The position numbers were made by a program, and so were the translations under genes. From positions 21,576,001 through 21,640,000 of the forward strand of contig OZ038379.1 in assembly GCA_964036045.1 (NCBI GenBank): a stretch of 64,000 nucleotides of DNA. The letters run 5' to 3'. The notes below the pieces were generated by a model that worked only from the letters and a program-made list of their open reading frames with translations, searched no databases and was not told the origin of the DNA. Of the stretch, positions 2 to 53,422 are shown piece after piece. The first letter of the stretch is position 1. Each line of letters begins with the position of its first letter. The stretch comes from Eutreptiella sp. 'Long Island Sound 2002'. Lineage: Eukaryota; Protista; Euglenida.

Positions 2-3000
2 CGTGTGCGTCAGCGGGCCCTCCAGCGTCACGGCGGTGTGCGGGCGCACGGCGACGGTGCCGTTGCTGTGGAAGCCGCGACCGGCCAAGAGATGGTGCGT
101 CGGCTCCAGGAGCGCGACCAGATCCGAGGCCGCGAGCTGCGAGGCGAAGATCACGCTGGCGGCGATGCTGTTGAGGAGGGCGTGCACCCCGGCGCTGACA
201 AGCGGGCCTTCGAAGACGGTGGTGGCCCGTGCGATGGTGACATTGCCGGCGCTGGTCATGCCGCGGGCCCCGACGGTGTGCCGCACACGGAACAAGTCGT
301 CGGCGGCCGAGGAGCCCCCGGTAAAGAGGGCGGCGGCGCCGGCAGATAGCGATAGCAGGCCTTCGCCCCGGTGCCTCAATTCACCATGAAACGCGACCGA
401 AGCACCCGTTTCAATGGTGATGTTGCCCATGGACAGGAAGCCCAGCCCTCCGACGTAGTGCTCTGTGGAGCATCGGTCGCTCACTTGCAGCAGCTGCCGT
501 GCACTGCCCATTTGCAGATCGTCTTCCGTGAATGCAGCAATTTCCTCGGCACAACCGTCATCCACCGAAGAGCCAAACACCACCTTGGCACGGCTGCTCT
601 CCAAGTACGCCTGCACTCCGTAACTCCACAGCGACCCTGCAAATGTGGCCACAGACGTCTGGAACGTGATGTTACCGGCACTCCTCATGCCAAGGGCTGC
701 GATGTGGTGGTGCACAAGGGCTGCCTCATCCGCCATCCAGTTCTTGCCCTCGTCGTATCCAGCGAATGTCGCAACTGCCCCGGCAAACAGGTCGATGATG
801 CCCTGTCCCAGGTGCTTCAGAGGACCTTGGAACGTAGTCGCCGCTCCTGCCTCAATGCTGATGTTACCCATGGACTGGAACCCAAGGCCTCCAACCCAAT
901 GCCTGGTGAAGTCCTCATCACTCATCTGCAACAATCTGCGTGCACCAGACATGTCCTCCTCTGCCCTGCTGGCAAGAGAGACAGCAGCAAGCTCCTCGAT
1001 CCGGTCTTGGCTCAGCATGGAAGCAAACCTCACAACCGCACTGTTGCTGCTCATGTAAGCCTGCTTACCTTCACTCACCAATGGGCCCATGAAGATCGTC
1101 TCAGAGCGGTCGAAGCTCATGTTGCCAGCACTGATCATGCCCAGACCAGAAATGGAGTGCCGCACCAAAGCCATGATGCCCGTCATGAAATCTGGAATTG
1201 AGCCATATGCACCAGTGAACAGCACATGTCCGCCTGCATGCATATCGATCAGACCATCACCAGTATGATTCAGCGGGCCTTCAATCGTTGTATTGGCACC
1301 CTTTGTGATGCTGATGTTGCCCATGGACAGGAAGCCCAGCCCTCCGACGTAGTGCTCTGTGGTGTACTCCTCGGCTACTTGCAGCAGCCGGCGTGCACTG
1401 TCCATCTCCTGGCCATCCTGAGGGGTGTCCACCGAAGAGCCAAACACCACCTTGGCACGGCTGCTCTCCAAGTACGCCTGCACTCCGTAACTCCACAGCG
1501 ACCCTGCAAATGTGGCCACAGACGTCTGGAACGTGATGTTACCGGCACTCCTCATGCCAAGGGCTGCGATGTGGTGGTGCACAAGGGCTGCCTCATCCGC
1601 CATCCAGTTCTTGCCCTCGTCGTATCCAGCGAATGTCGCAACTGCCCCGGCAAACAGGTCGATGATGCCCTGTCCCAGGTGCTTCAGAGGACCTTGGAAC
1701 GTAGTCGCCGCTCCTGCCTCAATGCTGATGTTACCCATGGACTGGAACCCAAGGCCTCCAACCCAATGCCTGGTGAAGTCCTCATCACTCATCTGCAACA
1801 ATCTGCGTGCACCAGACATGTCCTCCTCTGCCCTGCTGGCACGAGAGACAGCAGCAAGCTCCTCGATCCGGTCTTGGCTCAGCATGGAAGCAAACCTCAC
1901 AACCGCACTGTTGCTGCTCATGTAAGCCTGCTTACCTTCACTCACCAATGGGCCCATGAAGATCGTCTCAGAGCGGTCGAAGCTCATGTTGCCAGCACTG
2001 ATCATGCCCAGACCAGAAATGGAGTGCCGCACCAAAGCCATGATGCCCGTCATGAAATCTGGAATTGAGCCATATGCACCAGTGAACAGCACATGTCCGC
2101 CTGCATGCATATCGATCAGACCATCACCAGTATGATTCAGCGGGCCTTCAATCGTTGTATTGGCACCCTTTGTGATGCTGATGTTGCCCATGGACAGGAA
2201 GCCCAGCCCTCCAACGTAGTGCTCTGTGGTGTACTCCTCGGCTACTTGCAGCAGCCGGCGTGCACTGTCCATCTCCTGGCCATCCTGAGGGGTGTCCACC
2301 GAAGAGCCAAACACCACCTTGGCACGGCTGCTCTCCAAGTACGCCTGCACTCCGTAACTCCACAGCGACCCTGCAAATGTGGCCACAGACGTCTGGAACG
2401 TGATGTTACCGGCACTCCTCATGCCAAGGGCTGCGATGTGGTGGTGCACAAGGGCTGCCTCATCCGCCATCCAGTTCTTGCCCTCGTCGTATCCAGCGAA
2501 TGTCGCAACTGCCCCGGCAAACAGGTCGATGATGCCCTGTCCCAGGTGCTTCAGAGGACCTTGGAACGTAGTCGCCGCTCCTGCCTCAATGCTGATGTTA
2601 CCCATGGACTGGAACCCAAGGCCTCCAACCCAATGCCTGGTGAAGTCCTCATCACTCATCTGCAACAATCTGCGTGCACCAGACATGTCCTCCTCTGCCC
2701 TGCTGGCACGAGAGACAGCAGCAAGCTCCTCGATCCGGTCTTGGCTCAGCATGGAAGCAAACCTCACAACCGCACTGTTGCTGCTCATGTAGGCGTCCGT
2801 TCCGTTACTCACCAGGGACCCCAAAAAGATGGTCTCGGACAGCACAAAACTGATGTTGCCCAAGGACCAGAAGCCCAGCCCTGCCACCGAATGCTTAGTA
2901 ACAGCAGCAGGCGACAGAGCCTTGCTGTGCAGCAGCCGTCGGGAAGAGGACGCAGCTTCATCAGGCAGGTCTACGGTAGACGAACCATGGGACGTAAAAA

Positions 3001-6000
3001 TGACTGTGGCATCGGAGCTGTACAACAGGGAGGTCTCGCCATGGCTTTGCAGGGGTCCTTCAAATGAGGTCACGGACCAGTCAAAGCTGATGTTACCCGC
3101 GCTCGTGAGACCCTCCGCAGCAACGCGATGGGGCACGATGTTGTTGCCTGTGAAACGTGCATGTGTACCAGATGTCATGTTAATGATCCCATCACCCTTG
3201 TGGTCCAGCGGGCCCTGGAAGGTGGCAGTGGCCCCTGTCAGAATACTGATATTGCCCATGGAAAGGAACCCGACCCCACCAATTAAGTGGTTGGTGAACG
3301 TCCGGAACATATCAGCACGCTGCTCTGGCATCTGCAACAGTCGGCGGGAACCGAAGGCGTTCTCGTTCGCATGCATCGTAGACAACAGGTCATCGGTCTC
3401 CTGCGGGCTTTGAGTGGCATCAAGAACAATGGTTGCGTTGATACTGTCCATGTATGCTGTCTCACCGTCACTGATAAGAGGAGCTTTGAAGGTCGTGATG
3501 GAAGTGTCGAAGCTGATATTGCCGGCACTCCGCATACCCCGGGATGCAACAAGATGCTTCACCATGGCATCCCTGTCCTTCAGGAAGTCCAGCTGCAGCA
3601 GCTGGCGGCCATTGCCCTGAGATTCCGCAGAGTACTTGCCAGTGAACAGCGCATGCGCTCCAGCAGTCATTGTGATGATCCCACGGCCGGTCTGGTTCAG
3701 TGGCCCCTGGAACGTTGTATCAGCACCGGTCACAATGCTGATGTTGCCCTTGGATTGGAAGCCCAAACCACCAACCAAGTGGTTGGTGAAGTTCTCAAAC
3801 ATGTGTGTGCTTCCGTCCTCCATTTGCAGCAGTCGGCGTTTACCCAGACCTTCGGCTGCCTCTTCAACCGCCTTCACCGTCATCCCAGCTGTTTGCCCAG
3901 AAACACCAGATGCAAACACAACAGTGGCGTTGATGCTGTCCATGATTGCAGTCTCTCCATCGCTCCGCAGGGGTCCCTCAAAGGTGGTCTCAGATACGTC
4001 GAAGCTGATGTTACCCGCACTGGCCATGCCCAACGCTGCAACACGATGCTTCACAAGCTTCGCCTGGTCAATGCCGTCGCCCTCCTGCAGCAGCTGCCGC
4101 CACATGGGGCTGCCAGCATCGCCGTATGATCCTGTAAACAGCGCATGTGCTCCAGCAGTCATGGTGATGATCCCACTGCCGGTGTGGTTCAGTGGTCCCT
4201 GGAACGTCGTATCAGCACCGGTCACAATGCTGACGTTGCCCATGGATAGGAAGCCCAGTCCACCAACCAAGTGGTTGGTGAAGTTCTCAAATATCTTCTT
4301 GCTTCCGTCTTCCATCTGCAGCAAACGGCGGGTGGTGAAGGGACTGTCTCCATCGTTATTCGCCGCGGAAAGAACTCTCGCGGTGTCCTCCGCGCTTTGG
4401 GTTGCATCAAACACAACCGTCGCATTCGTGCTGTCCATGTAGGCCGTCTTTCCGTCGCTCACAAGGGGCCCCTTGAAAGTCGTTACCGATACATCGAAGC
4501 TGATGTTGCCTGCACTGCGCATGCCCATGGCTGCCACTTCGTGCTTGACCATATCACCCCAAGAAGGAATGAATGATGATTCATCAAGCAGGCCACGGCC
4601 TGTTGACCCATACTTGCCAGTAAACAATGCATGTGCACCGGCCGTCATATCAATGATACCCTGGCCGGTGTGGTTCAATGGCCCCTGGAACGTTGTGTCC
4701 GCGCCAGATACGATGCTGATGTTGCCCATGGAAAGGAATCCCAGTCCTCCAACCAAGTGATTGGTGAAATTAGCGAACTTCCCATCCTTCATCTGCAACA
4801 GCCGACGCTTCATCAAAGTGGAATCGAGTGATGAGCTATCGGCAGTGTAAGAGTCATCGTCTAACTCTGTTGCATCGCTGGACGCAAACACAACCGTGGC
4901 ATTGATGCTGTCCATGTATGCTGTCTCACCATCGTTGTGCAGCGGACCTTCGAAGGTGGTCACTGATACATCAAAGCTGATATTGCCCTCACTGGCCATC
5001 CCCCTTGCAGCAACAAGATGCTTCACCAGCTTCTCTTGTCCATCCAACAACTTGAACTGCTGCAACTCCTTTCCGAGGCGCTTCTGAACCTGACCATAGT
5101 CACCAGTGAACAGCGCATGTGCTCCAGCAGTCATTGTGATGATCCCACGGCCGGTGTGGGTCAGTGGCCCCTGGAACGTCGTATCAGCACCAGTCACAAT
5201 GCTGATGTTGCCCTTGGATTGGAAGCCCAGTCCACCAACCAAGTGGTTGGTGAAGTTCTGGTACATTACATACCCTCCATCTTCCAGTTGTAGTAACCGC
5301 CGCATCCCCAGTTCTGTGACGTCATTGTCAGTCTGCACAATGTTAGCCTGAGCGATGATTTTCCCAACGTCTTCCTTGGAGAAGGGTGATGCGAACTCTA
5401 CAGTCGCATTGGCGCTCTTCATGTAGGCTGTCGTACCATCGCTAACCAGAGGACCTTCGAAGGATGTTACGGACCGATCAAAGCTGATATTACCTGCACT
5501 CATCATGCCCTTGGCCGCCACACGGTGGTTCACAAGGCCCTCTTTGTCAAGCATCTGCATCAGACCACGCCCGGCGAGCCCGTCGGGGTAGGCACCAGTG
5601 AACAACGCGTGTGCTCCCTCAGTCATGTCAATGAGGCCCTCACCAGTGTGATGCAATGCTCCCTGGAATGTGGTGTCAGCCCCACTTGTGATACTGATAT
5701 TGCCCATGGAGAGGAACCCAAGGCCTCCCACCAAGTGCCTGGTGAAGTTCTCATACATCATGGAGTCCCCGTCTTCGGTTTGCAGCAGCCTGCGCTTTGT
5801 TAGCGTACTTGGTCTGTCACCTTCGTAGCTCGCCTGGGAAAGGCGTTTCTTCGACGTACCAGAGGAAAACACGACGCTGGCATTGATGCTGTTCATGTAG
5901 GCAGTCTTGCCATCACTCTGAAGACGTGATTCAAAAGTGGTCACCGAGAGGTCGAAGCTAATGTTTCCTGCACTCGTCATCCCGAGGGCCGCAATACGAT

Positions 6001-9000
6001 GCTTCACCATCCCCTCCTGACCTGGCATTTGGAGCAGAGTGCGAGAAATGGTGGCATCGGGGTAGTCACCAGTGAACAATGCATGCGCTCCCTCAGTCAT
6101 GTCAATTAGCCCATCGCCGGTATGAGTCAGTGACCCCTGGAACGTTGTGTCCGCACCGGTCACAATGCTGATGTTGCCCTTGGATTGGAAGCCCAGTCCA
6201 CCGACCAGGTGGTTGGTGAAGTTCTCGTACATTCCAACGCGCTGCCCAGACACTTGGAGGAGACGGCGGGATGAAAAATCAAAACCTTGAGTACCCATGG
6301 AGGCAAGGTCGAGGTAAATTGTTTCTGAGCTTTGGGTTGCATCAAACACAACCGTTGCATTCGTGCTGTCCATGTAGGCCGTCTTTCCGTCGCTCACAAG
6401 GGGCCCCTTGAAAGTCGTTACCGATACATCGAAGCTGATGTTGCCTGCACTGCGCATGCCCATGGCTGCCACTTCGTGCTTGACCATATCATCCCAAGAA
6501 GGAATGAATGATGATTCATCAAGCAGGCCACGGCCTGTTGACCCATACTTGCCAGTAAACAATGTATGTGCACCGGCCGTCATATCAATGATACCCTGGC
6601 CGGTGTGGTTCAATGGCCCCTGGAATGTTGTGTCCGCGCCAGATACGATGCTGATGTTGCCCATGGAAAGGAATCCCAGTCCTCCAACCAAGTGATTGGT
6701 GAAATTAGCGAACTTCCCATCCTTCATCTGCAACAGCCGACGCTTCATCAAAGTGGAATCGAGTGATGAGCTATCGGCCGTAGAGGTGTCACCGGGTGAT
6801 GCTGTGGTATCGCTGGACGCAAACACAACCGTGGCATTGATGCTGTCCATGTATGCTGTCTCACCATCGTTGTGCAGCGGACCTTCGAAGGTGGTCACTG
6901 ATACATCAAAGCTGATATTGCCCTCACTGGCCATCCCCCTTGCAGCAACAAGATGCTTCACCATGGCATCCCTGTCCTTCAGGAAGTCCAGCTGCAGCAG
7001 CTGGCGGCCATTGCCCTGAGATTCCGCAGAGTACTTGCCAGTGAACAGCGCATGCGCTCCAGCAGTCATTGTGATGATCCCACGGCCGGTCTGGTTCAGT
7101 GGCCCCTGGAACGTCGTATCAGCACCGGTCACAATGCTGATGTTGCCCTTGGATTGGAAGCCCAAACCACCAACCAAGTGGTTGGTGAAGTTCTCAAACA
7201 TTTGTGTGCTTCCGTCCTCCATTTGCAGCAGTCGGCGTTTACCCAGACCTTCGGCTGCCTCTTCAACCGCCTTCACCGTCATCCCAGCTGTCTGCCCAGA
7301 AACACCAGATGCAAACACAACAGTGGCGTTGATGCTGTCCATGATTGCAGTCTCTCCATCGCTCCGCAGGGGTCCCTCAAAGGTGGTCTCAGATACGTCG
7401 AAGCTGATGTTACCCGCACTGGCCATGCCCAACGCTGCAACACGATGCTTCACAAGCTTCGCCTGGTCAATGCCGTCGCCCTCCTGCAGCAGCTGCCGCC
7501 ACATGGGGCTGCCAGCATCGCCGTATGATCCTGTAAACAGCGCATGTGCTCCAGCAGTCATCGTGATGATCCCACTGCCGGTGTGGTTCAGTGGTCCCTG
7601 GAACGTCGTATCAGCACCAGTCACAATGCTGACGTTGCCCATGGATAGGAAGCCCAGTCCACCAACCAAGTGGTTGGTGAAGTTCTCAAACATCTTCTTG
7701 CTTCCGTCTTCCATCTGCAACAGTCTGCGCTTCACCAGGCTGGCGTCGATTTCCTCATCCTTCGCCCCGTTGTACTCTCCACTACCAGACAGTTGGGCCA
7801 CTGCGTTTCGCACCTGCTCCTCGCTCATGCTCATGACAGGCGATGAGAACACGACACTCGCATTGGCACTGTCCATGTAAGCCGTCTCCCCATCACTACG
7901 CAGTGGTCCCTCAAAGGTTGTAACCGACAAATCGAAGCTGATGTTTCCTGCACTCTTCATCCCCAAGGCTGCTACACGATGCTTCACAAGATCCTGCTCT
8001 CCATCCATGAAATTCACGGCCAGCATCCTGCGTGCCAAAGAAGCCCCAATGGCATCGCCATACTTGCCAGTAAACAATGCATGTGCACCGGCCGTCATAT
8101 CAATGATACCCTGGCCGGTGTGGTTCAATGGCCCCTGGAATGTTGTGTCCGCGCCAGATACGATGCTGATGTTGCCCATGGAAAGAAATCCCAGTCCTCC
8201 AACCAAGTGATTGGTGAAATTAGCGAACTTCCCATCCTTCATCTGCAACAGCCGACGCTTCATCAAAGTGGAATCGAGTGATGAGCTATCGGCAGTCCCA
8301 TCCGCAGACCATTGCTTCTGTGAGCTAGCCTGCAATGCTGTGGTATCGCTGGACGCAAACACAACCGTGGCATTGATGCTGTCCATGTATGCTGTCTCAC
8401 CATCGTTGTGCAGCGGACCTTCGAAGGTGGTCACTGATACATCAAAGCTGATATTGCCCTCACTGGCCATCCCCCTTGCAGCAACAAGATGCTTCACCAT
8501 GGCATCCCTGTCCTTCAGGAAGTCCAGCTGCAGCAGCTGGCGGCCATTGCCCTGAGATTCCGCAGAGTACTTGCCAGTGAACAGCGCATGCGCTCCAGCA
8601 GTCATTGTGATGATCCCACGGCCGGTCTGGTTCAGTGGCCCCTGGAACGTCGTATCAGCACCGGTCACAATGCTGATGTTGCCCTTGGATTGGAAGCCCA
8701 AACCACCAACCAAGTGGTTGGTGAAGTTCTCAAACATTTGTGTGCTTCCGTCCTCCATTTGCAGCAGTCGGCGTTTACCCAGACCTTCGGCTGCCTCTTC
8801 AACCGCCTTCACCGTCATCCCAGCTGTCTGCCCAGAAACACCAGATGCAAACACAACAGTGGCGTTGATGCTGTCCATGATTGCAGTCTCTCCATCGCTC
8901 CGCAGGGGTCCCTCAAAGGTGGTCTCAGATACGTCGAAGCTGATGTTACCCGCACTGGCCATGCCCAACGCTGCAACACGATGCTTCACAAGCTTCGCCT

Positions 9001-12000
9001 GGTCAATGCCGTCGCCCTCCTGCAGCAGCTGCCGCCACATGGGGCTGCCAGCATCGCCGTATGATCCTGTAAACAGCGCATGTGCTCCAGCAGTCATCGT
9101 GATGATCCCACTGCCGGTGTGGTTCAGTGGTCCCTGGAACGTCGTATCAGCACCAGTCACAATGCTGACGTTGCCCATGGATAGGAAGCCCAGTCCACCA
9201 ACCAAGTGGTTGGTGAAGTTCTCAAACATCTTCTTGCTTCCGTCTTCCATCTGCAACAGTCTGCGCTTCACCAGGCTGGCGTCGATTTCCTCATCCTTCG
9301 CCCCGTTGTATTCTCCACTACCAGACAGTTGGGCCACTGCGTTTCGCACCTGCTCCTCGCTCATGCTCATGACAGGCGATGAGAACACGACACTCGCATT
9401 GGCACTGTCCATGTAAGCCGTCTCCCCATCACTACGCAGTGGTCCCTCAAAGGTTGTAACCGACAAATCGAAGCTGATGTTTCCTGCACTCTTCATCCCC
9501 AAGGCTGCTACACGATGCTTCACAAGATCCTGCTCTCCATCCATGAAATTCACGGCCAGCATCCTGCGTGCCAAAGAAGCCCCAATGGCATCGCCATACT
9601 TGCCAGTAAACAATGCATGTGCACCGGCCGTCATATCAATGATACCCTGGCCGGTGTGGTTCAATGGCCCCTGGAATGTTGTGTCCGCGCCAGATACGAT
9701 GCTGATGTTGCCCATGGAAAGAAATCCCAGTCCTCCAACCAAGTGATTGGTGAAATTAGCGAACTTCCCATCCTTCATCTGCAACAGCCGACGCTTCATC
9801 AAAGTGGAATCGAGTGATGAGCTATCGGCAGTCCCATCCGCAGACCATTGCTTCTGTGAGCTAGCCTGCAATGCTGTGGTATCGCTGGACGCAAACACAA
9901 CCGTGGCATTGATGCTGTCCATGTATGCTGTCTCACCATCGTTGTGCAGCGGACCTTCGAAGGTGGTCACTGATACATCAAAGCTGATATTGCCCTCACT
10001 GGCCATCCCCCTTGCAGCAACAAGATGCTTCACCATGGCATCTTTGTCCTTCAGGAAGTCCAGCTGCAGCAGCTGGCGGCCATTGCCCTGAGATTCCGCA
10101 GAGTACTTGCCAGTGAACAGCGCATGCGCTCCAGCAGTCATTGTGATGATCCCACGGCCGGTCTGGTTCAGTGGCCCCTGGAACGTCGTATCAGCACCGG
10201 TCACAATGCTGATGTTGCCCTTGGATTGGAAGCCCAAACCACCAACCAAGTGGTTGGTGAAGTTCTCAAACATTTGTGTGCTTCCGTCCTCCATTTGCAG
10301 CAGTCGGCGTTTACCCAGACCTTCGGCTGCCTCTTCAACCGCCTTCACCGTCATCCCAGCTGTTTGCCCAGAAACACCAGATGCAAACACAACAGTGGCG
10401 TTGATGCTGTCCATGATTGCAGTCTCTCCATCGCTCCGCAGGGGTCCCTCAAAGGTGGTCTCAGATACGTCGAAGCTGATGTTACCCGCACTGGCCATGC
10501 CCAACGCTGCAACACGATGCTTCACAAGCTTCGCCTGGTCAATGCCGTCGCCCTCCTGCAGCAGCTGCCGCCACATGGGGCTGCCAGCATCGCCGTATGA
10601 TCCTGTAAACAGCGCATGTGCTCCAGCAGTCATGGTGATGATCCCACTGCCGGTGTGGTTCAGTGGTCCCTGGAACGTCGTATCAGCACCAGTCACAATG
10701 CTGACGTTGCCCATGGATAGGAAGCCCAGTCCACCAACCAAGTGGTTGGTGAAGTTCTCAAACATCTTCTTGCTTCCGTCTTCCATCTGCAACAGTCTGC
10801 GCTTCACCAGGCTGGCGTCGATTTCCTCATCCTTCGCCCCGTTGTACTCTCCACTACCAGACAGTTGGGCCACTGCGTTTCGCACCTGCTCCTCGCTCAT
10901 GCTCATGACAGGCGATGAGAACACGACACTCGCATTGGCACTGTCCATGTATGCCGTCTCCCCATCACTACGCAGTGGTCCCTCAAAGGTTGTAACCGAC
11001 AAATCGAAGCTGATGTTTCCTGCACTCTTCATCCCCAAGGCTGCTACACGATGCTTCACAAGATCCTGCTCTCCATCCATGAAATTCACGGCCAGCATCC
11101 TGCGTGCCAAAGAAGCCCCAATGGCATCGCCATACTTGCCAGTAAACAATGCATGTGCACCGGCCGTCATATCAATGATACCCTGGCCGGTGTGGTTCAA
11201 TGGCCCCTGGAATGTTGTGTCCGCGCCAGATACGATGCTGATGTTGCCCATGGAAAGAAATCCCAGTCCTCCAACCAAGTGATTGGTGAAATTAGCGAAC
11301 TTCCCATCCTTCATCTGCAACAGCCGACGCTTCATCAAAGTGGAATCGAGTGATGAGCTGTCGGCAGTCCCATCCGCAGACCATTGCTTCTGGGAGCTAG
11401 CCTGCAATGCTGTGGTATCGCTGGACGCAAACACAACCGTGGCATTGATGCTGTCCATGTATGCTGTCTCACCATCGTTGTGCAGCGGACCTTCGAAGGT
11501 GGTCACTGATACATCAAAGCTGATATTGCCCTCACTGGCCATCCCCCTTGCAGCAACAAGATGCTTCACCATGGCATCTCTGTCCTTCAGGAAGTCCAGC
11601 TGCAGCAGCTGGCGGCCATTGCCCTGAGATTCCGCAGAGTACTTGCCAGTGAACAGCGCATGCGCTCCAGCAGTCATTGTGATGATCCCACGGCCGGTCT
11701 GGTTCAGTGGCCCCTGGAACGTCGTATCAGCACCGGTCACAATGCTGATGTTGCCCTTGGATTGGAAGCCCAAACCACCAACCAAGTGGTTGGTGAAGTT
11801 CTCAAACATTTGTGTGCTTCCGTCCTCCATTTGCAGCAGTCGGCGTTTACCCAGACCTTCGGCTGCCTCTTCAACCGCCTTCACCGTCATCCCAGCTGTC
11901 TGCCCAGAAACACCAGATGCAAACACAACAGTGGCGTTGATGCTGTCCATGATTGCAGTCTCTCCATCGCTCCGCAGGGGTCCCTCAAAGGTGGTCTCAG

Positions 12001-32178: not shown

Positions 32179-32519
32179 GTTTGTCTAGATGGTTTCGGAG
32201 TCACTGAAGGTCTAGCTCGCCCACGCTAACGCTGGAGGAGGCCGCGCGGGGCCACGGGACACTATGGCGTGGGTGTTGCGAGAACTCCAACTGCACCAAC
32301 AGGCAGAGTAGCAAGGAGTCCCAGGGGGGGGGGGGGGGGCTGAACTGAGGCCGCCGTATGAGGGGACAGCTCCTACCCTGTCACAGGTGTGCAACACACC
32401 ACACGCAGCATGCGCTTGGACACACGGCCCTCCCATTTTGCAAGGCATTCTGGGCCATTTCCATTTGGCAACGGCGCCTTCGGCACACCACACCACACCA
32501 CAACACAGCACAACTACTG

Positions 32520-40300: not shown

Positions 40301-40948
40301 TATGCCTGGTCTGCCCCACCCCCGCCCCGGGCGGTCCCCCCGGATACCAGGGCCCTGGTGCTGATATGCCAGAGCTCGGTACATGTCCCCCGGGGCGCGC
40401 CGGCCACCGCCCCCCCCCCCCCCCGGTCCAAAATCTGCGTCAAGCGCGGGGACCGGTACACCCCGGTCGACACGGCGAGCATGGACCTCGGGGACCACAG
40501 GGCCACCCTCACCCCACCCGGAGGCAACCCCCTGGCCATCGCTACGCCCATGGTGGCCAGGGCCACCTACGACAGGGCTCGGGGGGGACTCGTCATCGTC
40601 CCCTCGGCCCTACGGGCCCAGCAGCTCCGCGACGCCGACTGGAAGGGATGGAGCGCCTCGTGGGTCAGCTACGCCCGGGCCCTCCAGCCGGCCAAGCCGG
40701 TCGGCTTCAAGGTCCTGGGGGCGCGGGCCCCGGCCCTACGAGACTGGGTGCTCCCCAGACTCACGGGCGAACGGCCAGCGGGGACTCCCTCCCTGACCAC
40801 GGTGTTTGGCCTCATCGGGCGTGACCTGCGGGCAGCCCAGGAGGCAGCTGGCGGCTCGGCCACACACGCCGACCCCCAGGGCGGGCCCACTTCCTCAGAG
40901 CCGGACCCGGAGCCGGAGCACCCCACTCCCTCACAATCCCAGAATTGA
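37346..40948 (+). CDS. LINE ORF1 (1200 aa): Pro/Arg-rich with an RRM-like domain and a CxxC...CxxC cluster
   Basis: Intact ORF. RNP2-like VLHIRRLP and RNP1-like HGYLTF; WCTVCRFWRPSPCDQCP; lies directly 5' of ORF2. Confidence 0.78.
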   Translation: MFPSTPATPYMQRPPIPGGPPAPHPAGSPAFAAPPLPHYTHTPYAPHQRLVEVHSQPAYPAYYLREPRYGLPPPPPPPSPLPTVPPPDHRDLELAYLRGHVAGLDRRTEGPPPPKEAAQRAPPAPQAPAPDAVGEATPALLLAPARETEPRQDRRPPAPTEPPRRPQGATYRRSRSPTRDLRDDRRDHGRTSPGRGGRTAHRRPYRSPERYYQRRSEERPSGHRAPAARGRDHTPDRRDNRSRRDPPGSAPGLGRERRDPDDRRGYRSPSPDTARRLRYDAPDAGRRPQWEPRTAPDAQPPHVPRDKPPRKRQRHNKEGRQPAAQSPAGTPHRLPVHALAGTQTTPGLLAPCAQQARLPQDGAPRTPQKHRTGVTQTTPGLRGPGYASPSGAMKAPQQPRAADPPTVLHIRRLPTGWSRRHLADRFMWLDGAEGVAEAFYGGENHGYLTFRAHTQALAACAVVSAALGTVAPPPGRLPAAVHCVNRSVIRDLTVHTQRDAPGEERHDTPSAGAAPPRMDRPSLTEDDVRRLIADAVGGTQQVVHPRPQKPARAPTADGVGGAGRPLPRGPPPAQQAPISRERDPALPGGGAAPERSPEVTAARVSPPARPRAAAKGRTSQLSRRILAATGTPSDPGQPAAGHASAGPPRPGPSDVAAEGVSQDLLGADCQEEGHQQALASAPEAPAAHPQAPAGNPMTAQAHDGAEASAPPTGGHPPEGPALDWCTVCRFWRPSPCDQCPPQGAPQEEDEAAELAPEGERELGPRETSPALETPTSHAADDPPPPPIDVDASQGTATQLAGLLDDEAGALSPLEPLPPAVELDDDPAPPAAGRADSPPGELGPHESRLAALIADTALEEANPCKALDVAVFLDSKRLSAVGRRMRAAGQDTTPVPGPHSPEGDGLPPLLAQYAKRTRELLQLVGYILGVPSFSLSSWEGDAIPAPHPPGLGITVYYVIEGRVQLRLPTPEGGSRPGWWLQAMAYAYAWSAPPPPRAVPPDTRALVLICQSSVHVPRGAPATAPPPPRSKICVKRGDRYTPVDTASMDLGDHRATLTPPGGNPLAIATPMVARATYDRARGGLVIVPSALRAQQLRDADWKGWSASWVSYARALQPAKPVGFKVLGARAPALRDWVLPRLTGERPAGTPSLTTVFGLIGRDLRAAQEAAGGSATHADPQGGPTSSEPDPEPEHPTPSQSQN

Positions 40949-43900
40949 GGGCGCCCCGGAGGACGTGCACGCTGTGGGGTACATGTGGCTCAACGTCCGG
41001 GGCCGGTACCTCCGGCAGCGCCTCCTGGCGCAAGCCCTGCACATGGCAGCACGCCGCCCTACCCTCCTCATCCTGGCTGAGGCCCAGTCCCGGGCAGGCC
41101 CCGAGGACCCCCCCTTCCAGGACTACGCCCGTCACGTCGTGCTCCCCGCCCAAGGCAAGACGGGGGCGGGCCTGGAAGTATATGTCCGCACCGGGACAAC
41201 CACCCGGGCTTCCCTCCTCTGGGGCGCGGAGGATGCCAACGCCCTCCTCATGGAGGTCCTCACCCCGTGGGGTCGGCATCATGTGCTGGCAGCCCATGCC
41301 CCCCAGATCAGCATAGGCGTGGAGCCTTACGTGAGATGGTGGGCCGCCGTCTGGAGGGAGGTCACCTGCCTGGTCGACCCGACGACCGTCCTGGTTGTCA
41401 CGGACACCAACTCGGCGGCCCGACCGGCAGATAGAGGGACCCCGCGCCCCGAGGACACGGGCTACCGCACGTTCCTGAGGGCCTTCAACCTCAGGGACTT
41501 AGTGGACCTTCACCCGGTCCCGCAGGACACATACTCCTGCTTCCAGGGAGCCGCGCGCTCCCGCATCGACACAGCCGCCTGCCACAGCGAAGCGCAGTTC
41601 ACCATCGCCTCGACTACTGGGCGAGCACCCTCCTCTCGGACCACCACGTCCCCCTCCTTCTCACCGTCGCCTTCCCGGTGAACCGGCTGGACAAGCCCAG
41701 CCCCCATACGGTCTCCCGCACCCCGGAGTACCACCTGGGCCTAGTGGCCCTGTCCCCGGCCGACACGGCCGATTTCCACAACTCAATACTCCGCAGGAGA
41801 GCCTTGGACCCCCAGCTCGCCCCGAATCGGTGGCTGAAAGGCCTGCAAAGGGCCATCTACGATTGGGCCCACGCCACGGGCAGGGTCCGAGCCCTCCGCT
41901 TCCGGCAGTACCGCCTCAAGACGCGCCCGGCGGAGCGAGCTCCCCCCTCGCGGGCTCCCCAACAGCCCTTCCCAGCGCGCAGCATGCTCCCCACGGTGGG
42001 GCGTTTTACAGTGATGGCCCAGAGCATATTGGGCACCTCAGTGACGGCGGGGCATGCCCTCAAGCGGAGCCTAGTGGCCTTGGGAGAAGCCCAGCGCCAG
42101 CAGAGCCTCCGGGGGGTGAAACGCAGGGCCCTCCGACGCAAGTTGGAAACCCTCAATTTGAAACGCACCCCAGAGCAGTGGAGGGAGGTGCAGCGTCGTA
42201 GCAGGGGCCCCCCGCGCGATGTCTCGGAAATCCCCCTGGACAGCAAGGCGCTCCTCAACCCCAGGGAGACGTTGTCTGCCCTGTACTTGAGCCGCCTGCG
42301 GCTCCAGGGCCATAGCTACCGGATCCGAGATGACCCCGACCGATGGGCCCACTTCCAGAGGTACCTGGGGCTCCTGCCGCAGCATGCCCCGCCAGCCCGC
42401 GGCGACTATGTCCAGCCCCGCCACCTCTGGGAGGTGCAGTCGGGGAAGGCCCGCGGCCCCGACCTCCGCCTACCCGAAGCGGACGTCTGCATCGATATAG
42501 CCTGGCACCGACACCTGACGGAGGCGGACCAGAAGACCCTGTGCACCGTGGTGCGCAGCCCCCCAGTCAGCCGCACGGTGGGCAGGCGGGGGCGGGTTAC
42601 CCTGCTCCTAAAAAACCCGGACCAGCCGGTCCAGGAGGCAAACCTCCGGGGGATAACCATCTCCTCCCACATCTCCAAACTCGAGCCCACGGCCTTCTAT
42701 GCCGTGGCGACGGCCGTCTACGAGCGGGCCCTGGGGGGCCCCTGCCTAGTGGGGGGCATGCGGGGTATATCCCTCCAGGAGGTCGTCCGCACGGTGCACA
42801 TGAAGCCCGACCTGGCCAGGCTTCAAAACCGGATAGTAGACGTCCTGATCACGGATCTCGCGGAATTCTTCGACGTAATCGCGCAGGACATTCACCCTAT
42901 AGTGGGAGCCCGGGTGGGCCTGGGAGAGGCCGACCACCTCGCCACCCATACCGAGGGTTTCTCCTACACCCTGCCCTTGGGCCCCTGGCAGTCCCACACC
43001 CCAACGCAACTCCTGGGTACGCCCCAAGGTACCGTCCAGGGGGTCCATGCGGGGGCGACGGCGGCGCTCCCTTTCTTGCGATACATGGACATCGCATACC
43101 GGTCCTCGGCGGTGGAGCCCTTCCGCTTCCCGGGACTCATGTGGGTGGACGACACGATCGTCCTCTTGGAGCGGGGCGATTCCCACCCCATACAGGGGGT
43201 CCTCTTGGATCAGCGGGTATACTACCAGGGAATCCTGCGGGTGGACGTCCCTGACCGCAAGATCCAGCACGGCTCCACGTCAGACCCACGGCCCCTATGG
43301 TCGCCTACGCCAGCAGCCGTGGCCCGCCACCTAGGCCGCGCGTGGGTGACGAGTACCCCGGACCAGCGGCGGGAGGCACTGGCAGGGGCCCCGGAGATAC
43401 AGCCCTCCAGGGTCCTCCGATATATGGGAACCGACATTTACCTCCAGGGGGCGCCTACGGCCCCCCGCAACCTGCCGGGGGTCAGGGCGGAGCTCTGGAC
43501 ACAGCTCCGCCCCCAGCGGCTCTCCCCGGACGCGGCCATGATGGTACTCATGGCCAAACTCCCGAGCAAGCTGCTCCCCCTGGCCAGCGTGTACCGCCAC
43601 ACGGCCAGGGTACACGCGGCGAACGATGCTCTCATGGTGCGAGCATACAAGCACGTGACAGGCATCTCCCGCCACGCTCATACCGACGCGCTCTGGGGAC
43701 CCTAGGAGCATGGGTGCCAAGGTCTCACTCGGTCAGAGCACTCGTGGCAGGCGGCGGTAGTTCGAGAGTGGGTTCGGCAGGGGGCCTGGGCCAAGCAGGA
43801 GTTCCGGGACTCCCAGGCCTACTCCCTGCAAACGCACCAGGCGCTCAGGGGGGGCTGCCCGGCGGTGCTTACCCCGGGGCAGTACACGCATCACCCCAAG

Positions 43901-46177
43901 TGCCCCCACCTCATAGCCACGCTGCAGCGGGTCGTGGATGAGGTGGCTCTGCCCATGTGGATGCCGGGCCAGTGCTCAGGGACCACCCCCATCGTGGTCC
44001 GAGGTCCCGGTGGGCCGCGATCGGCGGCGGCGGCGGCCCCTGCCCCCCGGGTGGAGGTGTACACAACTCTGTATGGCGCCGTCGCGCAGGTGGTGGTCCC
44101 CCCGACGGTGTACAAGACGGTACAGGCCCTGGGCTACCATCACCTCGGCGACCTCTACACAGGGAATCACCAGGTGCTACCGGAGCGAGCCCTGAAGAGA
44201 CGAGCACCAACCCGCAAGGGGATCCCGGGGCTACGTGCGTGGCTAGCCCGCCACGCTGCGGTACTAGTCTCGCTCTTGAGGGAACCCACGCCGCGATGGC
44301 AAGCGGCACCAAAGGACTGGGTCCCGGGGGCCGTGCCCACCTATCAGGCGGAAGTCATAGTGGGGGGCCGGGCGGCCAAAACCACCCGAATGGAGACGAT
44401 ATACCATAGGGGGCAGCCCCTCCGGATGACCGCGGCCCTGCAGGACACCATGGAGACCGCGGGCTGGGCGCCAGAACCCCGGGTGTGCCAGCAGCCCCCG
44501 GGCACCTTGCCCAGCGACACCAGGCTCCACCGCCTCCTGGTGGCCCTCCTGGATATCCAGGTGCAGGTGGATGCGCCACTGCACACCCAGCTGTGGGGCG
44601 ATCACCGGCAGGAGTCCCTGGCCCAGCTCCAGCGCACTGGGGTCAGGGCGCCCACCGTCGTGTGGACGACAGCCCCCCCGACTGCCGCCTACTAGAACTG
44701 GGCCAGCACATCGCAGGCCCCTCTCGTGACGGTCACCTCGACGCTGCCGCCGTTTCCGTGGATCGCCATAGCCCCGGCGGCGGTGGCGCGCTTCCAATAT
44801 CCAGCGGAGTGCATGGCGCACAAATGCCCGGGGCACCCGCACAAGGGGCCCCTCTATTACTCCCTCGATACGGTGGGGTCAGTGCCGGCGGAGCTTCACC
44901 AGGCCCTGCGCACCCACCTCAGGGAGCACCATGGGGACATGGCCCTCCTGGCGCCACACGGCCGGGCGACCAGCCCCCCGCGAGTGTTGGCCCCTGAGAC
45001 TCGCCCGGGCGTCTGGTTCCATGACCTGCCTGCGCTAGCGACCCTCCGAGGCAGTGTCATGGCGGTGGATGCGGGGGCCACGCAGGCGGGTATGGCCATG
45101 GCCGGGGTCGTCCAGAGCGGGCCTGGGGAGTACCAGGCCCAGGTGGCCTCAGGAGTGGGCACCTCCCAGGAGGCGGAGGCGATGGCCCTCCTCTCGTATG
45201 CCCGCCGGCTGGCGACACAGCCGGGGGTTTACTAGCTGGTGCCGGACTCGGAGGCAGCAGTGGGGGCCCTCCGCACGTACCAGGAAGGAGGGCACTGCGG
45301 AGATGGCATCCACCACCTCTACGCCACTGTCCTGGGAGGGCAGCGCCTCTCCCCGAGGTCTGCCATCAATGTGGTGACCACACCATCGCACTGGATCACG
45401 GACCTCAACGTCCGTGTGGACGCAGCGACGCGGGAGCCGCCGGGGGTAGACCTCACGTGGCTCCTCAGGCGCCCCTACTCATTTATCCCCCCAGTGCCCT
45501 TCCGCGACCAGTGCCAGCTCTCCCCGACGGCGCTGAGTGACTGGTTGCAGGACCGGGCCTCCATACCGGCACAAGGCATCTACGAGGCCCGCTGGGGGGT
45601 AAACTTCATGCCAGGGGGGGGCCTCCCCCTGGACTGGTTCGACCACGACCAGCAGCGCCACATCACGGCGCATCGCATGGACAACGTCCCGACCATGGCC
45701 GTCCTAGCCCACCGTTCCTCCCACCGGGGCACGGTGCTGGATACAACGTGCCTCCTGTGCGGGACACAGCCCGAGACGGCGCCCCACCTGTGGGCCTGCT
45801 CGGCTCAATCGCACGAGTGGGGGCTAGCCCGCCGGCGCCTCGCAGCGTGGCTCGACCAGAAGGTGGGGCCACGGGCGGCCCCAGTGCGTCACCAGCTGTG
45901 GGAACCGACTGTGCTGGAGCAGTGGGCGGCAGCCCTGCGGACCCCCTCCATGCAGCTGGCCCACCTGGAGTGTACGGGGCCCCACTCGCTGGGCACGGAG
46001 TTCTTCCGCCACGTCGTGGAGGAGTCCATACGGATCTGGTACGCCCACGCCAAGGCGCGTGCCACACTGCTGAAGGCCCGCCTGGGCCCGGGCAGCACGA
46101 TGGCGTGGGCGTTGCAGGAGCTGCGCCTGCACCAGCAAGCAGAAAGGGAAGGGGTGCAGCGGGAGCTCCTGGAATAA
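40945..46177 (+). pseudogene. LINE ORF2 pseudogene: APE endonuclease + reverse transcriptase + RNase H + CCHC finger
   Basis: APE motifs WLNVRG, LAEAQ, VTDTNS, SRIDT and LLSDH, with a frameshift at ~41613. RT motifs DLAEFFDVI, GTPQG and WVDD. RNase H motifs VDAG, SQEAEAMA, PDSEAA and SHW..LNVRVD. CLLCGTQPETAPHLWAC finger. In-frame TAG stops at 43703, 44693 and 45233. Confidence 0.92.
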
Positions 46178-46344
46178 GCGCGGTCGCCAGAGGCGAACTC
46201 ACCAGGTCTCCCCGACTCCCCCTCCCCCTGCCGAGGCCTACACACTTACGCACGGCGCGCACACAACACACACAGCCCAGCCCGTTTACCTTTACCCGTG
46301 GGTAGACATCCCGGCCTTTTGCCTTTTGGTAACAGCGCCTTCGG

Positions 46345-46601
46345 CACACCACGGCACAGCGGAGCACAGCACAGCACAGCACAGCACAGCACAGCACAGC
46401 ACAGCACAGCACAACACAACACAGCACAGAACAACACAACACAGCACAGAACAACACAACACAACACAACACAACACAACACAACACAACACAACACAAC
46501 ACAACACAACACAACACAACACAACACAGCACAACACAACACAACACAACACAACACAACACAACACAACACAACACAACACAACACAACACAACACAAC
46601 A
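46345..46601 (+). repeat. (CACAG)n/(CACAA)n microsatellite, 3' tail of the LINE
   Basis: Direct reading; begins ~170 bp after the ORF2 stop. Confidence 0.92.
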
Positions 46602-47235
46602 CGGGCTTGCGGCGTGGCTAGACCACAAACTAGGCAGCCGGGCTGCATCGGTGCCCAACCAGCTGTGGGAGCCGGCGCTTCTAGAGCAGTGGGTGGCTGC
46701 GTTGCGCACGCCCTCCATGCAACGAGCTCACATGGAATACTCTGGGCCCAGACACTGGGGACTGAGTTCCTGAGTTCCTGCGCTACGTCATCAAGGAGTC
46801 CATCAGAATCTGGTACACCAATGCCAAGGCGTGTGCCACGTAGTTGAAGGCCAGCCTGGGCGTGGGTGTTGCCGGAGCTACGCCTGCACCAGTAGGCGGA
46901 ACGAGGGAATCCCGCGGGAGCTCCTGGGCTGACAGCCATCGCCTGGTGGATGGCCTCCAAGTCTCCCCTTTCCCCCGCTTTCCGCCGATGTCAACACACT
47001 TACACACAGTGCGCACGCTACACACACTGCCCTCTTGTTTACTTGTACCCGTGGGTAGACACCCTGGCCATTGCCTTCTGGTAACAGCGCCTTCGGCACA
47101 TCACGACACAACATGACACAACATGACACAACACAACACAACACAACACAACACAACACAACACAACACAACACAACACAACACAACACAACACAACACA
47201 ACACAACACAACACAACACAACACAACACACCACA
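46602..47235 (+). mobile_element. Decayed 3' fragment of the same LINE family with its own (CACAA)n tail
   Basis: LAAWLDHKLGSRAASVPNQLWEPALLEQWVAALRTPSM matches the end of ORF2; the same 3' UTR motif is followed by acaac repeats at 47101-47235. Confidence 0.85.
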
Positions 47236-49331
47236 CCATTGCCCCGGGCCAGTGGACCCACCACCGTCACTACCTCCTCCTACTGCGAGGGCTGCAGTTG
47301 GCGGTGGACCAGGTGGGCCTGCCCATGTGGCTCCCACGGCAATGCCAGGGGACGTCCCCCATCATAGCCCTCGCCCCGACCCCCCCCCCCTAGCGGGGGC
47401 CGGCCCAACAGCGCCCGCCCCAGTAGCCCCGTATGACACGGCGTATGGTGCCAGAACCCTTGTCCACATGCCTCAGGCAGTCTTCACCGCAGCCCTGGCA
47501 CTGGGGTACCACCACGTTGGGGACTTCTACACCCCGGAGGGCACATGTGCAGTGCCAACGACCTACGAGCAGGGGTGCCCTGGGGCCGGACGGTGGACAT
47601 GATCCGGACATGGCTCCGGCAGCACGATGCCGTGTGGCAGCCCCTAGTGGGGGCCCCGGCCCCCCGATGGCAACAAGCCCCCAAGACATGGACGCCAGGC
47701 CCAATACGGCCAGACACCACCACGGCAGTCATCGGCGAGGCCAAAACCACCCCTACCGGGTGGTGTACCAACACTGCACGGCCATACAGGTCACCACGGC
47801 CTGCAAGACGTCATGGCAATCATGGGATGGTCTGTGGTGCTGCCCACCTGTGAGCAGCCACGCTAGGACCTCCCCAGCGACACCCGACAGCACCGACTGG
47901 TGAGCCTATTCGACATCAACACGCAGGCCGAGCCCCCCCTCCATATGTGCTTGCACGACGAGCGGTGGGTAACCACACTCCCGAAGCTGTAGGCCACAGG
48001 CACGGAGGGTCCCACGATGGTGTGGCACCGCAGCCGGCCGGACAGCCCTTACTGGGAGTGGGTGGCTCGTGCACGGCACACAACTCTAACGATCACCCCC
48101 ACCCCGCCGCCGGAGCCGTGGATCGAGCTCCGAACCAAGGCGGTGGCCCTGTTCAAATACCCCACCTGATGCCTTACCCACGAATGCCCACGGCACCTGC
48201 ATCGAGGCCCCCTCTACATGGCGCTGCATGCACTAGGGGCCCTACCGTCGGAGCTAGGCCTAGCACTCCAAACCCACCTACGGGAGCACTTTGGGGGACA
48301 CGCAACGCTCCATCCCCATAAGACCCGACGGCAAGTCCCATGTACCTGCAGGCAGACGTAGCCGGGGATATGGTTCCATGACCAACCCCCGCTGGCCACG
48401 ATCCATCGTGGCCACTGACGCCGGCACCACCCCGGCGGGCATGACGATGGCGCTCACGTATGAGAGAGCACTAGGGGAATACACGACCAAGACAACGGCG
48501 GGGATAGGAACATCCTAAGAAGGAGAGGCCTTGACCCTGGTGCTCTGCATCCGAAGGCTAGAGGTACACCACGGCACCTATTGGGTGGTACCAGACTCGG
48601 AGTCAGCGGTGGGCGCCCTCTGAACGTACCAAGAAGGAGGGAAGTGTGGTGACGGGATACACCACCTGTGAGCACACACCTTGGGGCGGAACACCTATCC
48701 CCGAGGTTCGCGATCAACGTGGTGGTAACCCGCTCCCAGTAGATCACCTCCATCAATGTCCGGGTGGACGTGGCCACCAAGGAGGAGCCACACGTGGATC
48801 TCACATGGATGCTACGGCACCGGTACGCCTACCTCCCCCTGGTACTGTACCGGGACCACTGCCATCTAGCTCCAACGGACGCGCAAAATGGTTGCAAGAG
48901 CAGGCGGCGCTACAAGCACAGGAGGGGACCCCACTACCAACCAGGCCTGGGCCTGCCCCTGGACTGGTTCACCAGCGACCAGCAGCGGCATATAGGGGCC
49001 CACCGCATGCGCAACTTGCCCACCATGACGGTGCTGGCAGAATGCGCACAGCACCGCAACCTGCAGATGCACCAGCAGTGCCTGCTGTGCGATAGTGGCC
49101 GGAGACCGCCCAACATGTGTGGGCCTGCCCGGTGCAGACCCACCAATGGTGCCCATCACACACCCCTGCCCGTTTTCCTATTCCCGTAAGTAAGACATCC
49201 CAGCCATTGCCATATGGTAACAGCGCCTTTAGCACACCACACCACAACACAACACAACACAACACAACACAACACAACACAACACAACACAACACAACAC
49301 AACACAACACAACACAACACAACACAACACA
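47236..49331 (+). mobile_element. Older decayed LINE copy (pre-RNase H region to zinc finger) with (CACAA)n tail
   Basis: Homologous to ~43905-45780 (e.g. VATDAGTTPAGM, GTYWVVPDSESAV, GLPLDWF..DQQRHI.AHRM, CLLC), with many frameshifts; tail at 49241-49331. Confidence 0.85.
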
Positions 49332-49382
49332 AATTCAGCAGCAGTAGCAGTAGCAGCAGCAGCAACAGCAACGTAGACACAC

Positions 49383-49730
49383 CAGTGTGATTCAGAGGGC
49401 CCTGAAATGTGGTATCAGCACCGGAGTCAATGCTCACGTTGCCCTTTGAGGCAAAACCCTCCCCACCGACCAAATGATATGTTGCATTCTGCAGCATTGT
49501 CTGGGCGCCATCTTCTGTCTGTAACAGGCGGCGGATGGCAAACCCAGTGGCCTCGCCATCACCACCATACAGAGACTGAACCTCGTCCCAAGACTGGCCT
49601 GACACACTGGAGGAGAAGGTAACTTTGCCCCCGGTACTGTTCATGAAGGCCCCGTCACCGTCGCTGATCAGGGACCCCTCGAAAACGCTCTCCGACTTCT
49701 CGAAAGAAAGATTGCCCGCACTCATCACAC
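49383..49730 (-). CDS. Exon of giant repeat gene (upstream of the 19.2-kb intron)
   Basis: gccttag|GT GTG ATG AGT GCG GGC AAT ... AAT CAC ACT G|gtgtgt; 348 nt, phase 1->1; contains IRRLLQ; joins PLNHTG|SGIINM across intron 30215-49382. Confidence 0.88.
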
Positions 49731-49939
49731 CTAAGGCATGGCAGGGGTGGGGGGCGAAAAGTGTAAGCACACGGGGAGCCCCTTCCTCCTTGTAAAGGGC
49801 TCAGATATCAGCGGGCCAAAAAGGCCCTGACATCTGAGGCCCCTTTTCAACCCGCCCCTTGCTTCAGGGGGCTCAAGCAACCTTCCTTTTTTCCGTGCCC
49901 AATATTAAGGGTACGACCTGCAGACCACTGGTGATGCCT

Positions 49940-51754: not shown

Positions 51755-51898
51755 CTGAACCAGCAACAACATGCCGCGTGTCTCCCAAGGCATCATCTGT
51801 GTACACACCACTGAACATCATGTTGGCACCAGATCCCAGGTTGACACGGTTGCCAGTCCCGCTGTGGCTGAGGGGCCCAGACATAGTCACACTTGCAC
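51755..51898 (-). CDS. Exon of giant repeat gene
   Basis: gtgtctgcag|GT GCA AGT GTG ... GCT GGT TCA G|gtgtgc; 144 nt; ASVTMSGPLSHSGTGNRVNLGSGANMMFSGVYTDDALGDTRHVVAGSG. Confidence 0.82.
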
Positions 51899-52476
51899 CT
51901 GCAGACACAGAGTGAGGCTTCAGGGTGCCCTGCGCTTATTCTGCACACGTACCATATATCCCGAGGGCATTGTGCAAATAACACAAGCACCAAAGGTTAC
52001 CGAAACAACACCTCAGCACCACAACAAATCAGGCAAATCCCACTCCAAAGGCAGGAAAACATGCAACAGAAGCAGAAATACAACCATCTCCATTCCAACA
52101 GAATTTGAACTGCAAACCACCGGGGCGGCTGCCTGGCGGAATGTGACCTCAAGGGGTGTCCAACCATTTTAGGGTTGTAGAGGGGGGACCCCCCCCCTTC
52201 GTTGACCCAAACCCAGGGGGTAGGCGGGTTGGGTGGTCAGCCACCTGGGTCCCCTGGGGGGGTCGGTGGGTACCCCAACATACATACCTCAAAATGATCC
52301 CCATGACACGCTGATCATTTTGAACATACACAAGTGGGGTAGAAAAATTTCTCAGAAAAATTTGCCCATGGGCTCAGGCTCCCATCAGCCAAGGTCCGAC
52401 CTGGAGGTCAGGTCGGGGTCAAAATGTTTTTTTCTGTGTTTTTCACCCATTTTTGAATTCTCCACAAAATTTTGAG

Positions 52477-52957: not shown

Positions 52958-53307
52958 TTTTGAGTATAGACAGATAGGGTGGAATGAAAAAATTCCGCTG
53001 CCGTGTGCGTAAAACAAAATCTCCGGCGCCTCCGGCGCCCACAAAATCCATTGACCCATACAACCATTTTGAGGTCCATAGAGCCCCCCACCCCCCCTCC
53101 CTTGGGGTCGGGTCCTGGCTGGCAGCCCCCCCCCGTGCTGCAAACCCCATGCTTGACGCAAAGCGCGTTAGGACAAGCGTCGTTTTTTCACGTGTCTGCA
53201 AAGAGGGAAGGAGGGGTACACCACATATGCCCGGTGCATGTGCATGCCATACAGTGCACTACAAACTCCAAGCAACGCAGCTGCAACGACCAGAGGTGAT
53301 GAACCAC

Positions 53308-53422
53308 CTGCCGTGACGCTGATGTTCCCTTCAGATCCAAATCCTTTGCCTCCAATTTGATGGGACGTTGTAGTCGACTGCATGAGCCGGCGTTCAGCAC
53401 CCGCCGTCGTCGCCAAAGACCC
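53308..53422 (-). CDS. Exon of giant repeat gene (RRLMQ variant)
   Basis: ttctgcttag|GGG TCT TTG ... GTC ACG GCA G|gtggtt; 115 nt, phase 0->1; GSLATTAGAERRLMQSTTTSHQIGGKGFGSEGNISVTAG. Confidence 0.8.

Follow-up and report, generated by a model that had tools for sequence, protein, structure and literature searches.

Eutreptiella encodes a giant beta-helix protein with a selected RRLLQ motif at its unit boundaries, a possible tag for a secretory-pathway endoprotease

A stretch of 64,000 nucleotides from the euglenid alga Eutreptiella sp. 'Long Island Sound 2002' (assembly GCA_964036045.1, contig OZ038379.1, positions 21,576,001 to 21,640,000; this whole stretch is called the window, and its own coordinates are used below) carries a gene for a giant repeat protein, in which unit after unit opens with the pentapeptide RRLLQ. 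The question raised by this locus is why these five residues have been kept at the head of about 50 units and what it is that reads them. A first-pass annotation had proposed that the protein is a precursor cut at RRLL in the secretory pathway by a subtilase of the site-1-protease (S1P/SKI-1) type, which would release free glycoprotein blocks of ~15-18 kDa. We describe here the gene, the evidence for selection on the motif, a structure model of the units and the signs of secretory routing, and on the basis of sequence and model we give about an even chance to the view that RRLLQ is a tag for a secretory-pathway endoprotease, which would cut once per unit in an exposed loop.

The gene lies on the minus strand of the window. 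RRLLQ is absent from all three frames of the plus strand; on the minus strand one frame has 45 copies (926-23044, with first codons from 23044 down to 940), a second frame has three (23793, 24861 and 49533) and the third has one (29903), accompanied by one RRLMQ starting at 53392; all of these stand in register with unit-like coding sequence, and the chance expectation estimated from the amino-acid composition is ~0.003 copies per 7943 aa. The 45 motifs belong to a giant exon (2-23374) of at least 7791 codons, which leaves the window at its start; the open frame itself runs from 2 to 23830, and its residues 1-152 (23830 down to 23374) are intron read-through, a CAG acceptor being found just above 23374. 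Each motif opens a unit, and the spacings are 164 aa (13 times), 176 aa (nine times), 172 aa (eight times) and 165 aa (four times), the rest ranging over 138-224 aa. The units are 138-178 aa long except for a single 224-aa composite; the first pass had noted 140-175 aa. Tandem Repeats Finder and the order of the units define a tandem array at 3638-23011 with a period of ~492 nt and a 1536-nt super-repeat composed of three unit types (164, 172 and 176 aa).

The first-pass annotation was thus right about the existence of the repeated RRLLQ-led units and about the four RRLLQ and the RRLMQ of the upstream exons, and several details of its description needed revision. It had counted ~47 motifs in the giant exon, where there are 45 plus one RRLLH (2927-2941), located inside the 224-aa composite unit, and one RQLLQ (485-499), located in the last motif loop of the window (472-555). 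It had regarded the diverged units at low coordinates as 5' units, which on the minus strand are C-terminal, and it had ended the system at 480, where the open frame continues to position 2 and off the window. The predicted protein exceeds 8000 aa.

How strictly the motif is kept was examined in 40 distinct linker contexts from three loci, namely the window, a sister locus of the same species (L001) and a Logan contig (L003). The first position is R in all 40 contexts, the second is R in 39 and Q in one, the third and fourth are L in all 40, and the fifth is Q in 39 and A in one. The linker positions before the motif vary freely, apart from a hydrophobic residue at -3, and those after it show partial conservation (first hydrophobic, then E/D, D/E and G); K or R precedes the two arginines in 16 of the 40. 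RRLLQ is spelt by 11 codon combinations in the window and by 13 in L001. This variety of codons, together with the invariance over 40 contexts, excludes a DNA-level signal or mere recent copying, and the motif is under selection at the amino-acid level.

The units contain an internal control for this selection. Each unit consists of two related halves of ~48 aa (consensus H-L-V-G-G-L-G-F-x-S-x-G-N-I-S ... T-T-F-x-G-P-L ...), which are joined by a short loop, and successive units are joined by an acidic, Ser-rich loop of 35-45 aa carrying RRLLQ near its end. At the homologous place in the middle of the unit, before the second half, the loop often reads R-x-L-L-Q, and RRL is found in only one of 37 distinct versions; about a third of the distinct versions have no motif at all. 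Variants of the boundary motif are nearly all at positions 4 and 5 (RRLMQ, RRLLH and RRLLA), and the single change within RRL is the RQLLQ of the last loop. The N-terminal repeats of the window gene and of its paralogue, moreover, stack without any motif loop. Since the mid-unit loops have let the motif decay and the N-terminal repeats stack in its absence, RRLLQ is dispensable for the fold, which argues that the motif is read by something outside the fold and at unit boundaries only.

The fold itself was modelled with AlphaFold for two units, using an alignment of 29 two-unit stretches from the window locus and its paralogues. All four solenoid halves have a predicted local distance difference test score (pLDDT) above 90, and the predicted template-modelling score is 0.67. 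The three copies of RRLLQ in the model (residues 26-30, 184-188 and 348-352) are all in stretches with pLDDT below 50, and a short helix is predicted in each linker; the motif is thus placed in loops and not in a strand, burial in a strand being one of the outcomes that the first pass had named as refuting its proposal. When the model was compared with known structures by VIA-align, ~200 residues within model residues 43-377 superposed on single right-handed beta-helix domains (Candida Awp1/Awp3b, tapirins, Ag43, EspP and pectate lyases) at ~3 Å with Z of 12-15.6. The strand pattern given by DSSP, the pLDDT and these Z values agree with a right-handed parallel beta-helix at the level of fold, in line with the earlier guess of a beta-helix or solenoid. 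The fold became apparent only with VIA-align: Foldseek against PDB and AlphaFold clusters returned beta-helix matches only, with non-significant E-values; Pfam searches with three stretches of the giant protein gave no family reaching its curated cut-off (Chlam_PMP, Fil_haemagg and DUF2807 included); and a protein atlas gave only weak bacterial adhesin and S-layer look-alikes with scores of 0.68 or below. In the model, the halves of both units stack as one continuous beta-helix rod, off which the motif loops hang, and ~50 units with ~4 coils each would make a rod estimated to be of the order of 0.1 micrometre.

Two features of the sequence are indirect signs of the secretory pathway. The N-x-S/T sequons for N-glycosylation, whose richness had been noticed in the first pass, number 214 against 56 +/- 7 in shuffled sequences, an enrichment of about four-fold, and they occupy five conserved places per unit. 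The motif-less N-terminal repeats have other residues at these places, and the sequon asparagines are thus not simply demanded by the fold. Cys occurs only twice in the 7681 aa of the repeat region, and these two residues bracket the last motif loop of the window as C-x22-RQLLQ-x4-C. The same bracket recurs in L003, around two of its three motif loops, and in some loops of L001, the general layout being C-x(17-22)-motif-x4-C with the second Cys always four residues past Q. A disulfide over an exposed loop, if formed here, points to an oxidising compartment, and a Cys pair bridging a loop is the usual layout of protease-cut loops whose two chains stay linked. The protein is, from such sequence features, probably secreted or located at the cell surface.

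From the selected motif and these signs we infer the secretory routing, the cutting and the identity of the enzyme as follows. The giant precursor would stack as a long right-handed beta-helix rod, and after about every fourth coil an acidic loop of 35-45 residues would leave the rod and display RRLLQ, which a secretory endoprotease would recognise, cutting the precursor once per unit. The enzyme may be an S1P-type subtilase, which would cut RRLL|Q and leave an N-terminal Gln able to cyclise, or an aspartyl protease of the ASP5/plasmepsin V type, which would cut RRL|LQ, with Q as the fifth PEXEL position. The product would be either a rod that is nicked but stays assembled through its own beta-sheet, with a disulfide in addition where a Cys pair spans the loop, or separate pieces of 15-19 kDa.

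Concerning the enzyme, comparison with known systems is informative. According to the general rule for S1P, the substrate has R-x-hydrophobic-L; this leaves the invariant second R and the Q unexplained, and roughly half of the decayed mid-unit motifs would satisfy it as well. Plant pectin methylesterases are processed at RRLL and RKLL motifs, and S1P (SBT6.1) belongs to the plant subtilases that process pro-proteins (10.1101/2022.07.28.501549). Like substrates of S1P, the giant protein has RRLL in all of its unit-boundary loops, with pLDDT below 50 in the modelled ones. Its passage through the Golgi is probable. Substrates of S1P and plant pectin methylesterases, in contrast, have one or two sites, lying between pro-region and enzyme. 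ASP5 requires exactly R-R-L, cuts after L, tolerates change at the next two positions and cuts internal sites also, and plasmepsin V cuts R-x-L-x-E/Q/D and cuts RRLAE well; TEXEL, the motif of ASP5 substrates, can be far from the N-terminus, as in MYR1 (PMC4764566). RRLLQ satisfies both RRLxx and RxLxE/Q/D, and because nearly all variation of the boundary motif falls at positions 4 and 5 and the mid-unit loops have mostly lost the second R, the strict RRL rule of ASP5 fits at least as well as that of S1P. Differences from this system are that a classic PEXEL is one site soon after a signal peptide, in contrast to the ~50 internal sites here, and that the known substrates of these two proteases carry a single site and function in export to a host cell, whereas a free-living alga has no host. 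In our literature search, no paper was found that links enzymes of the ASP5/plasmepsin V type to dinoflagellates, the sister lineage of the apicomplexans.

The two enzyme types thus appear to fit the sequence about equally, and S1P is not favoured. Of the proposal made in the first pass, a secretory polyprotein cut by S1P, the part concerning the secretory pathway and cutting is consistent with the exposed and selected motif, the sequons and the Cys bracket, and the choice of S1P over an ASP5-type enzyme is not borne out. The free blocks of ~15-18 kDa fare similarly: units do lead with the motif, and the continuous beta-helix of the model makes a nicked rod an equally ready outcome. Within the cutting interpretation, we consider that cutting by S1P into free building blocks is rather unlikely. 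A more speculative proposal, which we likewise regard as unlikely, is that an ASP5/plasmepsin-V-type enzyme cuts after R-R-L in this free-living alga, in which case the enzyme and motif known as the apicomplexan export pair would be an older secretory maturation system, used here ~50 times for a giant beta-helix protein of wall, mucilage or extrusome.

Among systems in which one precursor carries many repeats, the nearest precedent is found in diatom RXL precursors (silaffin Sil1p, silacidins and cingulins), in which each repeat has a motif of the R-R-x-L type. The repeats R1-R7 of Sil1p end in RRIL/RRNL, which are removed on maturation, and one endopeptidase of the secretory pathway is thought to be responsible (PMC4557024). 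The diatom products are short, unstructured peptides, Lys/Ser-rich or acidic, unlike the folded beta-helix segments of 138-178 aa found here in another lineage, and their cutting has been shown while ours is inferred. Fungal repeat proteins processed by Kex2, such as alpha-factor and Ustilago Rep1, have units placed between dibasic sites and cut in the Golgi, and the frequent K or R before R-R resembles them; a dibasic rule nevertheless leaves L-L-Q unexplained, and the fungal products are small peptides. Polyproteins with many mature units in one reading frame, cut apart later, are also described for light-harvesting proteins and form II RuBisCO of dinoflagellates and euglenids (PMC3480386, PMC3747160). 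Those are plastid-targeted copies of well-known proteins with other linkers, unlike the present unnamed beta-helix with its secretory signs. As to the fold, beta-helix adhesins and wall proteins (A-domains of Candida glabrata Awp1/Awp3b, tapirins, and passengers of Ag43 and EspP) share it and likewise form long surface rods, but identity is 6-12%, loops that recur at regular intervals with a fixed pentapeptide are absent from all of them, and likeness of fold is no proof of common descent.

Explanations without a protease have to be weighed against these considerations. One is that RRLLQ has no meaning at the protein level and is maintained by recent copying of the array or as a signal in DNA or RNA, such as a CAG acceptor and an ATG for leader trans-splicing of separate unit genes, or that the units are separate genes. 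Most copies in the array are indeed near-identical, and many units read ...CAG ATG... at the end of the motif. Besides the codon variety described above, however, ~23.4 kb pass without a stop codon, 17 of the 45 motifs end in CAA and not CAG, only 13 of the 40 distinct contexts have M next to the Q, the motif is kept in paralogues that share 50-60% identity and have unrelated linkers, and one RNA contig crosses a unit boundary inside the array directly, without a leader. We regard this explanation as highly improbable, and separate trans-spliced genes were rejected on the length of the open frame, the codon variety and the RNA contig. A structural role alone, in which the motif would cap each unit boundary, act there as a hinge or help in packing and have no outside reader, could account for the invariance, the semi-conserved E-D-G after the motif, the hydrophobic residue at -3 and the short helix predicted in each linker. 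It appears quite unlikely, since pLDDT is below 50 for all three modelled copies, in the model the homologous mid-unit junction adopts its fold without the motif, which is gone in about a third of its distinct versions, and the N-terminal repeats stack without it.

A stronger competitor, which we consider possible though doubtful, is that RRLLQ is bound or modified and left uncut, so that it would dock a sorting receptor, a chaperone or a partner protein or donate Gln for cross-linking, and a single chain would offer ~50 even attachment points. The data for an exposed and selected motif serve this explanation equally, and a scaffold bearing handles at regular intervals would accord with the continuous beta-helix seen in the model. 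L-L-Q beside a flexible acidic stretch resembles the Q-tags of transglutaminases. The invariant Q is needless for cutting by S1P or ASP5, P2' being dispensable for the latter (PMC4764566). On the other side, R-R-L-L closely matches known protease rules, the Cys brackets are more easily explained if the loop is opened, and neither a binding partner nor a cross-linking enzyme is known here. Several observations also weigh against proteolysis as we propose it. The continuity of the beta-helix across the modelled units means that the rod could function uncut, and it argues against bead-like subunits; low pLDDT means the lack of a confident model and does not by itself prove disorder; and the comparison sequences are nearly all paralogues from one species, so that they give little cross-species conservation. 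Furthermore, an N-terminus with a signal peptide was found neither in the window nor in a walk of 18 kb upstream along a sister locus, where the repeats go on and then give way to a reverse-transcriptase element and a CA microsatellite, with no start with a signal peptide seen. In that sister sequence, the RVT_1 reverse-transcriptase open reading frame (ORF) and the microsatellite (L005:1-2100) lie just upstream of the first detectable repeat exon.

Upstream of the giant exon, a profile of the units revealed further unit-like coding on the same strand in other frames (~23.6-24.2, 24.8-25.2, 29.8-30.2, 49.4-49.8, 51.8, 53.3, 53.8-54.0 and 57.0-58.0 kb), with GT and AG, read on the minus strand, at every junction inspected. 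An exon at 23647-24205 with RRLLQ at 23779-23793 is defined by matches of the hidden Markov model (HMM), translation and a GT donor, and its edge at 24205 is seen in RNA; it is separated by a GT..AG intron (24206-24802) from an exon at 24803-25228 (RRLLQ at 24847-24861), and this in turn by an intron of ~4.6 kb with GT and AG sites (25229-29823) from an exon at 29824-30239 (RRLLQ at 29889-29903), the latter two exons being based on HMM matches, translation and RNA. Farther upstream, an exon with approximate edges (49375-49760, from HMM matches and splice sites) has RRLLQ at 49519-49533, and another (53300-53410, edges also approximate, from motif scan and translation) has RRLMQ at 53378-53392. 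Plain solenoid-repeat exons without the motif were matched by HMM at 51765-51935 (edges approximate) and 53830-54000, and the profile added two degenerate repeat exons without motif or sequons (57051-57161 and 57806-57967). The gene probably extends beyond 63460 and off the end of the window.

Transcription of this layout could be examined with public data from estuaries. RNA contigs from three metatranscriptomes map to exons only, and a DNA run covers the introns evenly. Two splices are visible: in a contig of X1, position 24205 is followed directly by 24803, with 597 nt left out, and contigs in X2 and X3 stop at 25228 and continue with 30 letters identical to 29824-29853. The gene is therefore expressed in estuarine populations, and because of these splices and the contig across a unit boundary, the upstream exons and the giant exon are parts of a single spliced transcript, which means that the units do not form messages of their own. 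In the DNA run X5, the word depth is ~450 on the array at 22500-23019 and ~27 on adjoining single-copy exons and introns, a ~16-17-fold difference, and the window has ~13 copies of that unit type. The array may be longer than assembled or variable between cells, and sister loci could also raise the depth.

The interval 30240-49374 has no unit-like coding between its flanking exons and is taken from this and its composition as a putative intron of ~19 kb. Inside it, a block of 67-73% G+C (34000-46000) includes a 94-nt unit repeated 24.5 times (34656-36962) and long open frames on the plus strand, among them one that is Pro/Ala/Arg-rich (37340-40945) and one with coding-like G+C of 0.70/0.50/0.81 by codon position (41435-43702). 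Five other ORFs of the window, including those of this block, gave no Pfam match above cut-off, and the block may be an inserted element or a gene of unfamiliar kind. Between repeat exons on the minus strand, an open stretch at 54950-55426 encodes a Cys-rich module unlike the repeats and without a Pfam match. Simple repeats in the window are CACAA x47 (46365-46602) and x28 (47097-47235), two 9-nt arrays (31201-31455 and 31921-32161) and a perfect 62-nt repeat in four copies (62892-63140).

Relatives of the protein are very few. Among 1.84 billion representatives, an exhaustive phmmer search found 14 hits, and a profile search over 5.8 billion proteins found 8, nearly all of them ORF fragments of one ENA assembly, which belongs to the same species because some of the fragments are identical to exons of the window. 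This assembly contains at least one sister locus, the aforementioned L001, with a 12631-aa open frame of the same RRLLQ architecture, and also a decayed copy of the array (L002), which continues into an unrelated open frame of ~1200 aa (L002:10860-14548). The motif is also present in the JGI protein P0023 and in the Logan contig L003 (2034 nt), which comes from another public run, has a lower G+C content (50%) and could belong to another species; L003 has one RRLLA variant without the second Cys, and an intron splits the motif between its two arginines. An apparent signal peptide of P0003 and a 'CRLLQ' in L003 were dismissed as intron read-through and are not real variants. A scan of JGI metagenome contigs found no relative, and literature searches on RRLLQ, on RRLL in dinoflagellates, on trichocyst proteomics and on dinoflagellate beta-helix proteins found no description of such a protein. 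On present sequence data, the protein has been found only in this species and one other sample.

If the protein is cut, it would be the largest repeat polyprotein of folded units known to us, and with ~50 identical sites it would be a clean natural substrate with which to seek this alga's secretory endoprotease. The exact position of the cut would discriminate among the enzymes, a cut after RRLL indicating a subtilase, after RRL an ASP5-like aspartyl protease and after RR a dibasic convertase, and the second outcome, if true, would bear on the origin of the apicomplexan export motif. If the protein is left uncut, it would still be an unusual rod, estimated at ~0.1 micrometre, with evenly spaced handles.

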